NCBI GenBank assembly: GCA_002269645.1
Contig: NIVC01000672.1
Span: 310,001-374,000 of the forward strand
Source: Macrostomum lignano
Lineage: Eukaryota
Direction: 5' to 3'
DNA length: 64,000 bases
Below, piece after piece: positions 12,943 to 15,762 of the stretch (position 1 is the stretch's first letter; each line of letters starts with the position of its first letter). The notes below the pieces were generated by a model that saw only the letters and a program-made list of their open reading frames with translations, was not told where the DNA came from and made no database searches. The position numbers and the translations under genes are program-made.

Positions 12943-15762
12943 ATGTCGGAGGCCATGGAGAGCCACTTTCAAAGGCTGCCCGATATCGGCGAAGTGAACG
13001 ATGTCAAAGACTTCATTGAGAAATTCGCGTGGATGCAAAAATGCGAGCCGTGGCTGGAGCCGGTGCACCTGGTGACCCTGGCGTGTCTGTACACGCATCG
13101 TGTCGTGGTGGACCTGCCGAAGAGTCTGGAGCTTCTTGATGAGGCTGAGAGACTGCAAAATTCCCAGAATGCGTCGGCAATTGTGGATGCAACGTATCTG
13201 ATCAAGACAGCGCGACTCAAGATGCGGGTGCTGCAGAGCTGCGACGGCTTTCCAAGCGGTTGGCAACAGGAGGCTGAGGAGCTGGAGGCTCTGTGGAGCG
13301 GCCCGGGCACCTCCGCTGCAGCCCGCGGATCCATCGGCTGGATTCAGATGCGCTGCAGCTACGCCAGGCTGGAATTCCTGACGGAGGCGAACGCGACGGA
13401 CCCGGGAAATTTCCACTGGCTGTTCGGCCTGGCGCTGGTCAAGTCGAGCATCCGCAGAAGTCGGAACTTGAGAAGCCCGGCGGACCAAGCTGAGCTCGAG
13501 TTTTGGACCGAAGCGGAAGCCAAGGCGGCTGACTCCGTCTACGACCACGTGCGGCCTCTTTTGCAGGCAAAGTTCGCGGAGTCGCTCCTGAGCTTGAGCT
13601 GCCAGCAGGCAAATCACAGCAGACAAAAGTGCTTGGAGTTGGTGAGATGCGCTGAAGACTTCTGCTGCTCGAGTGGCGACTCCAAGCAAGTCATCAACGT
13701 GCTCCCCACCTGCGTCAAAGTCTGCCGAATTCTGTGGATCGAGTGCGGCGCGAAGAAAATCCCGGCGGAGAGCCGAACAGAAGAACAAGCGAAGTTCTTC
13801 GAGTCGATCGAGGGCTTGGTGCAGTCTGCGTGCAGTCTGGCATCGAAGCTGGACGAGTGCTACGACAGCCCGAAGCTGTACGAACAGATCGGGCGGTGGT
13901 ACCTGCAGACTGGCGAGCTGCGCGAGGCCAAGAAGTACCTGTCGATGGCTGCTCCGGAACGAAACTATTTTGTGGCCCAGAAACTGATCGACTTGGACAA
14001 TGACCAGGATCCCAATAACTGTGACCAGGAACCCAAAAACTGTGACCAGGACCCCAGCGCCAGTCCGGACTCCATGGGTGAAAAAACCCACACCAAGGAA
14101 GAGCACATCGCCTGGATCTGCCAGCGCTACGACTCGCTGCGTCAGAGGATTTCCACGCCATCCCATGCGGCCAATATTCTGGGTTCAAAGGGCTACTTTC
14201 TGGCAACCAATGGCTGCGTAGCTGAGGGCGCGGAGTGCATCGCCTGGGCTCTGAATGAGTACGCTCAGGAAGAGGTCCCCAATGCTCGAATCCTCCTCAG
14301 CCCGTACAAGTGGAAGCATCTGGAGGCTGTGCTCAAGGACAGCGAAGACTTCAATGCGAAGTTTATCTTCGCCCTGGTCAAATCTGTTCGAGCAAAAAGC
14401 GAAAATAAAGAAGAGGCCGGGCAGCTCACGGCAGCCGCAATACAGAGCTACAGGGAATGCCTTCAAGCAGAGCAGAGTCACCAGCTGTCTGCTGAGCAGC
14501 TTGGGATTCTTCTTCTGGAAGCAAAGCAGTTTGATGAGGCGGAGAGACTGTTCAAGTCACTCGATAAGAAGCTGACTCACCGAAGTGCTCTCATCGCGGA
14601 CGCGATTCTGTCCCGGCTGGAGGGCGAGTGGTGCGACCTGAGCTTCAAGGAGAAGCGCGACTGCTTGGCAGAGTGCATCGAACTCGAGTGCAAGGACGCC
14701 GGAGTCTTGGTGCTGCAGTTTCTTCAGGAAGTGAAGCAGCAGACTAAGGAGGCTGGCGTCACCATCCGCATCTCACAAGCCGCTCAGACTGAGCCACTGC
14801 TGCACCAGCGGGCTCAGTACGAGCTGGCAGCTCGGCTGTTGAACTTGAGCGCCAGCAGCAGTTCGTTCTTCATCAAGAAGCGAATGCAATACAAGGCCAA
14901 GAGTCCTGATGAGGAATCCAGCAGCCGAATGCACGATGGGTACAGAAAGGCTAAGCAGGAGGCGGACAGCAAGTTCAAGCAGCTCTGCAAGGAAGTCAAG
15001 ACGGTGCTGGAGTTGGAAAAGTACCCAAGAAAAGCACTGCTCAAAGCCACGAGGCACCATCTCAAAGCAGAGCGCGAGAAAGAGAACAAGGTGCTCAAGC
15101 TCACGCTGGAGAACTCGCACAAGGCCGTGGACCACGCTTGGAAAACCTTCAACTGGGAGGTGCAGTCAGTTGAGTCGGAGGATGTGAGCTTCCGGCCCGT
15201 GGCGTACTTTCCATTCGCGTACAAGAAGAGCAGCGCCTACAAAGACCACTCAGAAGCCGAAATGGAGAAGCAGGTCGCTTTGTATCAAGCCGAGTCAAGC
15301 AAATGCACTGTGGAGTCGCTAAGCGAAGACCTCAGGAAGCATTTCGACAGAAACAAAAAGTTGAGCTTCTTCCCAGCGGCGATGGACAGCAAGAATGAGG
15401 AGGCCAGATGCCTGATTGAGCATGAGCACAGGATTCTGAGCAGCGAGGGCGCCTGGATCATCCTGTGGGTCTGGTCGGTCAACGAGGAGAAGCACGCCAT
15501 GCAGCTGGAGATCGACGCGCTGGAGGAGAAGGTGCAGCGGCTGCTCACCGCCGATGGAGCTCCGAGGAGCGTCTATGAGCTGGCGCACCGGGCCGGGGAG
15601 TTCGCCGAGGAGACCCGCCTGCTGCTGGACGATGCCGCGGTTGCCAGGGCTGTGGACAGCGCCAAGGCTAAGGCTAAGGCTAAGGCTAAGGCTAAGGCTA
15701 AGGCTGAGGCTGAGGCTGAGGCCGAGGCTGAGGCTGAGGCTGAGGCTGAGGCTGAGGTTTAG
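12943..15762 (+). CDS. IFIT-like TPR solenoid protein fused to a HEPN-like C-terminal module, paralog B; (KA)n(EA)n tail
   Basis: 939-aa intronless ORF with an ATG start. N-terminal helical repeats resemble IFIT/TPR segments (MESHF; LVTLACLYTH...SLELLDEAERL; GSIGWIQMRC; TDPGNFHWLFGLAL; DSPKLYEQIGRWY). The C-terminal half (14479-15627) is homologous to ORF 110-3496. Confidence 0.85.
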   Translation: MSEAMESHFQRLPDIGEVNDVKDFIEKFAWMQKCEPWLEPVHLVTLACLYTHRVVVDLPKSLELLDEAERLQNSQNASAIVDATYLIKTARLKMRVLQSCDGFPSGWQQEAEELEALWSGPGTSAAARGSIGWIQMRCSYARLEFLTEANATDPGNFHWLFGLALVKSSIRRSRNLRSPADQAELEFWTEAEAKAADSVYDHVRPLLQAKFAESLLSLSCQQANHSRQKCLELVRCAEDFCCSSGDSKQVINVLPTCVKVCRILWIECGAKKIPAESRTEEQAKFFESIEGLVQSACSLASKLDECYDSPKLYEQIGRWYLQTGELREAKKYLSMAAPERNYFVAQKLIDLDNDQDPNNCDQEPKNCDQDPSASPDSMGEKTHTKEEHIAWICQRYDSLRQRISTPSHAANILGSKGYFLATNGCVAEGAECIAWALNEYAQEEVPNARILLSPYKWKHLEAVLKDSEDFNAKFIFALVKSVRAKSENKEEAGQLTAAAIQSYRECLQAEQSHQLSAEQLGILLLEAKQFDEAERLFKSLDKKLTHRSALIADAILSRLEGEWCDLSFKEKRDCLAECIELECKDAGVLVLQFLQEVKQQTKEAGVTIRISQAAQTEPLLHQRAQYELAARLLNLSASSSSFFIKKRMQYKAKSPDEESSSRMHDGYRKAKQEADSKFKQLCKEVKTVLELEKYPRKALLKATRHHLKAEREKENKVLKLTLENSHKAVDHAWKTFNWEVQSVESEDVSFRPVAYFPFAYKKSSAYKDHSEAEMEKQVALYQAESSKCTVESLSEDLRKHFDRNKKLSFFPAAMDSKNEEARCLIEHEHRILSSEGAWIILWVWSVNEEKHAMQLEIDALEEKVQRLLTADGAPRSVYELAHRAGEFAEETRLLLDDAAVARAVDSAKAKAKAKAKAKAKAEAEAEAEAEAEAEAEAEV

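Follow-up and report, generated by a model that had tools for sequence, protein, structure and literature searches.

The analysed window is a stretch of 64,000 nucleotides (nt) from the flatworm Macrostomum lignano (assembly GCA_002269645.1, contig NIVC01000672.1, positions 310,001 to 374,000 of the forward strand), to which all coordinates below refer unless another contig is named. At 12943..15762 its forward (+) strand carries a gene, here called the target, whose product is probably an IFIT-related helical-repeat protein that is equipped with a new C-terminal domain and associated with RNA. The open reading frame (ORF) starts with ATG and comprises 939 amino acids (aa) plus the stop codon in a single exon, exactly within the boundaries given in the original prediction, an interpretation of the locus made from its sequence alone, and an in-frame stop codon (12931) is located 12 nt before the start. 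The description of the gene as intronless is likewise correct for the coding sequence, and the locus of the closest full-length relative, the protein P0013 (PAA70671.1, 1091 aa, 67% identity to the target), also consists of a single continuous frame of 1122 codons (locus L002).

An open frame of 939 codons would arise by chance with a probability of ~3e-16 for the whole window at its composition, and the target ORF is therefore not regarded as a chance frame. The GC content of 0.745 at the third codon position (GC3) compared to 0.389 at the second position (GC2) furthermore provides a coding signature. An antisense ORF of 414 aa (12922..14166, minus strand), which covers the 5' half of the target gene, is considered to be a by-product of the codon bias and not a gene, since its GC1 of 0.749 mirrors the GC3 of the sense frame. 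The gene calls of the assembly for the compared stretch of the contig (locus L003, matching window 1-13496 at 100%) contain only an upstream paralog of the target and an ankyrin-repeat gene, and no record was found when the exact product of the target ORF was looked up, so that the gene appears to be unannotated. It is densely surrounded by mini- and microsatellite arrays (10631..12295, 15665..16301, 17039..17618 and 18148..19402) with periods of 6, 8, 15, 19, 22 and 30 nt, many of which give rise to long spurious ORFs in several frames. An Rfam scan of the window yielded no matches. Judged from its sequence, the target is an M. lignano gene that is intact, of the expressed type and contained in a single exon.

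Structure prediction gives a protein that is helical throughout. Its residues 1 to ~560 form an alpha-helical repeat module that begins with an IFIT-related part and continues with ordinary tetratricopeptide repeats (TPRs). The N-terminal helical domain (aa 1-355, 12943..14007; this and all following features of the target lie on the + strand) is conserved across the family in both N-terminal alignments described below (A3 and A6). TPR models cover aa 309-545 (13867..14577) and are interrupted by an acidic low-complexity linker (aa 356-384, 14008..14094) which varies between paralogs and is partly derived from a 21-nt tandem repeat (14001-14056). The 34-residue TPR repeat was recognised in the target by the curated Pfam models, namely by TPR_19 at aa 497-544 (26.6 bits compared to a cut-off of 25, low-complexity tail trimmed) and more weakly by TPR_2 (aa 311-334), TPR_8 and TPR_12. 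Several TPR families were matched in four or five of 8 family members (best E 7e-10), and the family profile matched consensus-TPR (CTPR) structures with an E value of 6e-8. A single-sequence AlphaFold model was of no usable quality, with a predicted local distance difference test score (pLDDT) of 41. The C-terminal module (C-module, ~aa 560-905) follows, and the protein ends in a tail of (AK)n(AE)n composition (aa 907-939, 15661..15762), where the frame enters an AGGCTG hexanucleotide microsatellite (15665-16301); this tail is probably incidental.

HMMER was run exhaustively over 1.84 billion representative proteins and detected 12 clusters of related proteins at 50% identity. All named relatives belong to M. 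lignano and are designated as “hypothetical”, “TPR_REGION” or “C3H1-type” proteins, while the remaining ones originate from the ENA assemblies ERZ25074608 and ERZ26859043, in both of which the full collinear architecture is present. Two family copies are adjacent to each other on contig L001 and tandem copies also occur in the window of the target. The target family is thus small, lineage-restricted and tandemly duplicating. Literature searches on IFIT-like genes in flatworms and other invertebrates and on M. lignano gene identifiers yielded nothing informative and no mention of the family genes.

The second copy in the window is the annotated paralog PAA78669.1 (P0002; 110..3496, + strand), which combines a different, short N-terminus with the same C-module and a long tail. 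Its C-module (689..1723) shares 46% identity with aa 513-891 of the target (E 7e-80) and is followed by ~570 codons of minisatellite-encoded RGG repeats of the GGRGRGGS type. P0003 ends in FRGRGGSEH repeats which are independent of this RGG tail, and P0009 and P0019 are C3H1-type zinc-finger proteins according to their UniProt names. The C-module is therefore found in varying company: upstream of it most members carry the IFIT-like region and the 110..3496 paralog a short unrelated N-terminus, and downstream there are RGG repeats (110..3496 paralog and P0003), C3H1-named regions (P0009 and P0019) or the AK/AE tail (target). By this distribution among the family sequences it behaves as a self-contained unit.

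The annotated model of PAA78669.1 removes ~195 nt of the RGG minisatellite as an “intron”. In P0013 (L002) a hydrophobic linker insertion of ~60 residues at aa ~375-440 occupies the place of the acidic low-complexity stretch of the target, and P0001 is a truncated model which stops at the region of this P0013-type insertion. Also included in the 90% cluster of P0003 are a 4203-aa model named “AMP deaminase” and a protein of 617 aa without visible similarity to P0003 (P0015 and P0016); by eye, the 617-aa protein resembles the Tudor-SN type. These odd members are probably fused or mis-clustered gene models.

Between the target and the P0013 locus the ratio of non-synonymous to synonymous substitutions (dN/dS, Nei-Gojobori) amounts to 0.15-0.29 in every well-sampled region, which indicates purifying selection over the whole length of the target. 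An independent pair of paralogs from another organism (P0010 and P0020) gave values of 0.25-0.34. The synonymous divergence between the target and the P0013 locus decreases from ~1.5 (aa 1-355) to 0.54, 0.31 and finally 0.029 (aa 801-905), and the same 5'-to-3' gradient was found in the P0010/P0020 pair (0.01-0.02 in the C-module compared to 0.10-0.32 upstream). At the DNA level the 3' third is ~90% identical (window 14783..15717 and L002 12402..13327), compared to ~69-73% over the 5' part. According to this substitution pattern the C-module is under concerted evolution, and the drop of dS to ~0.03 indicates a recent gene conversion over the C-terminal core between paralogs that are located on different contigs.

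The absence from the gene calls, the satellite-rich surroundings and the multi-copy, intronless organisation might be taken as signs that there is no functional gene, but a chance ORF, a pseudogene or a frame derived from a transposon or a virus. This explanation is opposed by the low chance probability given above, by the purifying selection over the whole length and by the conservation of the architecture in three genomes. Furthermore, Pfam scans detected no transposase, reverse-transcriptase or viral domain, and BFVD and IMG/VR contained no viral relatives. It is already effectively refuted, and its remaining probability is negligible.

By profile comparison, the first 170-180 residues show a specific relationship to the N-terminal subdomain of the vertebrate IFITs. 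When the profile of the N-terminal 346 residues of the family (A3) was compared with the PDB, the top three matches were IFIT1 (4hou, E 1.1e-6; 5w5h, E 5e-6) and IFIT5 (3zgq, E 7e-5), followed by generic TPR proteins with E values of 0.085 or worse. The profile and the IFITs align in register, beginning with the first residues and reaching about residue 170-186. In terms of the family profile, aa 1-180 of the target (12943..13482) are the counterpart of subdomain I of the IFITs and of the beginning of their subdomain II (chain residues 7-170 of IFIT1 and 15-186 of IFIT5). An extended profile including three N-termini from ENA loci (A6) retrieved nothing but IFIT1 and IFIT5 below an E value of 0.9, and these at ~2e-4 to 7e-4. 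Since the extended profile keeps the IFITs alone, yet at weaker E values, the link is considered to be specific but modest. In the reciprocal search a profile of IFIT1 and IFIT5 detected P0003 with an E value of 0.0035, while shuffled sequences and mid-TPR decoys gave values >500. The N-terminus of the target aligns in register with P0003 (45 bits), and it is through this paralog that its link to the IFITs passes.

According to published work, the pentapeptide CHFTW in loop L1 near the N-terminus is shared without variation by all IFIT proteins (PMC11462223). It is present in exact form in the paralogs P0003 and P0018, whose sequences start with “...LECHFTW”, and in modified form as CHFKW in P0007 and P0010 and as CHLNW or CPFKW in other relatives. 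In the target its aligned counterpart is SHFQR (aa 7-11, 12961..12975), in which the H and the F are kept. The residues K150 and R186 of IFIT5 have been reported to be critical for RNA binding (PMC13197388). The motif GSIGWIQMRC of the target (aa 129-138, 13327..13356) places W133 and R137 opposite W146 and K150 of IFIT5, and K167 and D20 take the positions of R186 and E33, although this is a twilight-zone alignment.

Five segments had originally been proposed to parallel the IFITs in the same order. HMMER aligns four of them (MESHF; LVTLACLYTH..SLELLDEAERL; GSIGWIQMRC; TDPGNFHWLFGLAL) to the matching segments of IFIT1 and IFIT5. The fifth, SPKLYEQIGRWY compared with SVLLHHQIGLCY, did not hold, as a weak second HMMER domain places the stretch on an earlier segment of IFIT1. 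The idea of an IFIT-like TPR half is sustained at the level of the family by the profile, the CHFTW of the paralogs and the TPR models; the target itself is a degenerate member and matches no IFIT directly.

The C-module is helical throughout and represents a domain family that has not been described before. AlphaFold2 modelled aa 509-906 (14467..15660) from a 14-row alignment as an all-helical structure of 18 helices with a mean pLDDT of 84.9 and a predicted template modelling (TM) score (pTM) of 0.86. A Foldseek comparison of this model with 350,542 PDB chains gave no match at E<=1e-3; the best one had an E value of 0.048, a TM score of ~0.17 and a root mean square deviation >17 Å. The 50 PDB matches listed are almost all TPR or alpha-solenoid scaffolds, for instance LGN, SKI3, Tom70 and a nucleoporin, and no significant match was found in BFVD. 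Neither profile A2, built from the module, nor profile A5, built from its 92-residue core, retrieved anything meaningful from the PDB sequences. No relatives of the core were found in the genomes of 185,579 prokaryotic species, in IMG/VR or in the JGI metagenomes, and a word-index search with the compact core yielded only short unnamed fragments.

Further proposals concerning the module were rejected. The C-module is unrelated to the N-terminal module, an origin as internal duplicate of the IFIT-like region having received an hhalign probability of 0.3%, and descent of the core from bacteria or viruses was dismissed for want of relatives at the sensitivity of the searches. A match of the 110..3496 paralog to DUF7203 (E 0.0047) is taken as noise because it is sub-threshold and Pfam scans of the target or of the C-termini of other members gave no such match.

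Although the members share only 22-30% identity, ten residues of the module are invariant (R696, D730, P757, W838, W842, N847, K850, H851, H882 and E889) and five nearly so (E828, A881, A884, E886 and F887). The core (aa 813-900, 15379..15642), which comprises W838, W842, N847, K850, H851, H882 and E889, is the most conserved part of the family. The three motifs highlighted in the original prediction, ENSHKAVDHAW (aa 723-733, 15109..15141), YFPF (aa 755-758, 15205..15216) and NEEKH (aa 847-851, 15481..15495), were positioned exactly at 15109, 15205 and 15481 and coincide with invariant family columns (D730; P757; N847, K850 and H851). In the model D730 is part of a 34-residue helix and P757 of a loop, and the invariant N-x-x-K-H of the third motif forms a loop right after the short helix with W838 and W842. 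Within the core, the model is least reliable in this loop, where pLDDT falls to <50 (fragment residues 341-344). In the segment AHRAGEFAEE (aa 881-890, 15583..15612) H882, E886 and E889 are predicted to share one face of the last long helix.

The module had been interpreted as a putative HEPN-like nuclease, and the whole protein as an IFIT-like RNA sensor combined with an HEPN-type RNase in which NEEKH represents a variant of the R-x4-6-H motif. HEPN motifs sit at helix N-terminal caps, and the invariant NEEKH columns N847, K850 and H851 are predicted at or near such a cap; their N-x3-H spacing is shared with the RNxxxH motif of the KEN/RNase L type. The only profile resembling HEPN was the PADLOC model CARF_HEPN, which matched aa 521-634 of the target with 13.9 bits (E 0.0044). 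As this match occurred in one of 14 members, with a low score and outside the conserved motif region, it is dismissed as noise. HEPN families of Pfam and NCBIfam were not matched at E<=10 by any member, and the profile searches of the PDB, which is rich in HEPN structures, gave no such result either. HEPN proteins were likewise absent from the 50 PDB matches listed by Foldseek and from the BFVD matches, in a comparison that used the whole 398-aa model, small helical domains being hard for Foldseek; the C-terminus, despite its confident model, thus lacks the structural HEPN match that the original prediction required. In the columns of the family alignment neither of the two invariant histidines, H851 and H882, is preceded by a conserved arginine at a distance of 4-6 residues. 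At 5-7 residues ahead of H851 the columns hold V/I, a variable and a further variable residue, an arginine at position -7 from H882 occurs in no more than 3 of 12 sequences, and all other R-x4-6-H strings of the target lie in columns without conservation. What the family conserves is N-x-x-K-H. The proposed resemblance to bacterial HEPN-like proteins found no counterpart, given that the core lacks prokaryotic relatives. We conclude that the C-module is not an HEPN domain, and the scenario of an RNA sensor wired to an HEPN-type RNase is very improbable. The HEPN half failed every test run, and an RNA sensor wired to an RNase is therefore still a conjecture.

The same residues could belong to a new, non-HEPN enzyme domain, which would turn the protein into a true sensor-effector fusion of a novel type. 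The domain might act as a metal-independent RNase employing His, His and Lys or as a metal-dependent hydrolase employing H851, H882, E886 and E889. Such a function would be in line with the invariance of K850-H851, H882, E889, N847, D730 and R696 and the near-invariance of E828 and E886 at such low overall identity, and with the i, i+4, i+7 spacing that would bring H882, E886 and E889 onto one helix face. It would also agree with the core being the most conserved segment, homogenised between paralogs, and with the recurrence of the module next to different N-termini and tails as it is typical of effector modules. However, the module resembles no known enzyme fold or family, most of the neighbours listed by Foldseek are helical-repeat proteins of the solenoid or TPR-like type instead of compact catalytic bundles, and the NEEKH loop is of all parts of the core the one modelled with the least confidence. 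Taken together, an enzymatic C-module seems unlikely.

In the reading that we prefer, the protein works by binding, most plausibly of RNA, in a defence or RNA-surveillance role; we would give it an even chance of being correct. Like the IFITs, the protein would act by binding and not by cutting, its helical-repeat front end would hold a ligand, most plausibly an RNA end, and the conserved C-module would add a further surface for binding or regulation. RGG boxes and CCCH fingers belong to the classical elements that bind RNA, and the RGG repeats and C3H1-type names of the paralogs are the main, though indirect, pointer to RNA as the ligand.

Several observations weigh against this reading. The addition of family members to the N-terminal profile weakened the IFIT E value from 1e-6 to 2e-4, and the target alone matched no IFIT, neither in the PDB nor when compared with the profile of IFIT1 and IFIT5. 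The target departs from the invariant CHFTW with its degenerate SHFQR, which it shares with P0013. Of the pocket residues E33, T37, Q41 and Y156 of IFIT5, which contribute to binding, the last three align with F, F and L in the target, and family-wide neither the equivalents of K150 and R186 nor those of E33, T37, Q41 and Y156 are conserved. The N-terminal 355 aa carry a net charge of -11, which gives no hint of a nucleic-acid binder. Region-level dN/dS of the target/P0013 and P0010/P0020 pairs shows no signal of arms-race selection. The non-catalytic mode of action could well be wrong, since invariant N, K, H, H, E, D and R residues are more typical of an active site than of a passive surface.

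Some of these points would also fit an ordinary TPR protein-protein scaffold without any role in RNA binding or defence, its likeness to the IFITs being due to a distant common ancestry of the N-terminal capping unit or to convergence. Most TPR proteins are protein scaffolds; the acidic N-terminal domain, the mostly unconserved IFIT pocket residues, the dN/dS of 0.2-0.3, as it is typical of housekeeping-type constraint, and the helical scaffolds among the structural neighbours of the C-module (LGN, SKI3, Tom70 and the nucleoporin) would all be expected. According to the published view the IFITs are furthermore confined to jawed vertebrates and TPR matches in invertebrates are not IFIT homologues (PMC3688568). 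On the other hand, among the hundreds of PDB chains with TPRs the family profile singles out the IFITs, aligning with them in register from residue 1. The exact CHFTW, the RGG tails and the zinc-finger-named paralogs speak against a plain scaffold, and lineage restriction, tandem duplication and gene conversion are rather expected of a family of conflict genes than of core scaffolds. A scaffold function is therefore doubtful, but deserves serious consideration.

A more far-reaching interpretation would combine a true non-vertebrate branch of the IFITs, resulting from an early-bilaterian origin or from horizontal transfer, with a new catalytic effector in the C-module, so that sensing of non-self RNA and the response to it would be united in one chain. 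We consider this combination as quite improbable. The exact CHFTW in flatworm proteins and the retrieval of only IFITs from the PDB nevertheless stand in contrast to the reported restriction to jawed vertebrates (PMC3688568). If structure and phylogeny confirm the flatworm link, the placement of the origin of the IFITs would need to be revised, and the link would reveal the task of an IFIT-type module in an animal without interferon. The C-module, which folds well in the model, is strongly conserved, contains invariant His, His, Lys, Asn and Glu residues and has no known relative, is a clear-cut candidate for a new domain family. Since transgenesis and RNA interference are tractable in M. lignano, the questions of the IFIT link and of the C-module are testable.

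Apart from the two family members, the window contains the ankyrin-repeat gene that is located between them (8956..10161, + strand; Ank_2, E 4e-29; NCBI-annotated 490-aa product). Two near-identical repeat-rich ORFs of 326 aa (20208..21188 and 22950..23930, both + strand) are 2742 nt apart, which points to a recent tandem duplication of ~2.7 kb. A block of ~10 kb (30001..40000) whose GC content is ordinary shows an extreme GC skew (-0.54 to -0.77). The repetitive “PTNPILQI” ORF (30705..31649) lies within this block, which presumably represents a strand-asymmetric satellite. The minus strand carries exon-sized pieces of two genes, the first succinyl-CoA ligase-like (41550..42563; Ligase_CoA, E 2e-25), the second with cysteine-rich Cys_rich_FGFR repeats (48586..53126; E 2e-34) and taken by us to be similar to Golgi apparatus protein 1. 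The latter gene is split over several ORFs and thus demonstrates that introns exist in this genome. On contig L006 of the ENA assembly ERZ25074608 a glycoprotein gene of the Monjiviricetes_fusion family (PF24664; 1..1060) lies ~5 kb from a fragment of the C-module core of the family, and it may represent an endogenous viral element of its host.

Among the known systems the HEPN RNases (Cas13, Csm6, RNase L/Ire1 KEN, sacsin and DZIP3-like) resemble the target in being all-helical, in the polar residue four positions before an invariant His (N-x3-H) near a helix N-terminus and in the fusion to repeat-type sensor domains, which is a known theme of HEPN proteins. An HEPN domain is a four-helix bundle of ~110-150 aa, and the RNase activity comes from a composite active site formed by a dimer. 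The C-module differs by its far larger size and solenoid-like look and by lacking a conserved Arg, a profile or structural match and prokaryotic relatives.

With the generic TPR scaffolds (CTPR, LapB, LGN/Pins, SKI3 and Tom70) the protein shares the TPR models of aa 309-545 and the weak structural neighbourhood of its C-module, whereas the structural matches themselves are insignificant (E at least 0.05, TM ~0.15-0.2) and the invariant polar constellation of the core is foreign to generic TPRs.

Compared to IFIT1 and IFIT5 (4hou, 5w5h and 3zgq/4hoq) the target is twice as long due to the extra module of ~340 aa, is encoded by a single-exon gene in a flatworm without an interferon system, and shows a degenerate CHFTW and mostly unconserved residues of the 5'-triphosphate (5'-ppp) pocket. 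IFIT genes consist of two exons. The coding sequences of the target and its paralogs, each in one continuous frame, do not share this organisation. The gene structure of the IFITs is known to be conserved (PMC3688568). IFITs are induced by interferon or viruses, and their tandem TPRs form a helical clamp of ~470-490 aa. Common to both are the all-helical TPR architecture with the first 170-180 residues of the family in register, the CHFTW of the paralogs P0003 and P0018, the GW...K/R motif and the basic equivalent of R186 kept in the target (W133, R137 and K167), and the occurrence as a multi-copy, tandemly duplicated family, as in the IFIT clusters.

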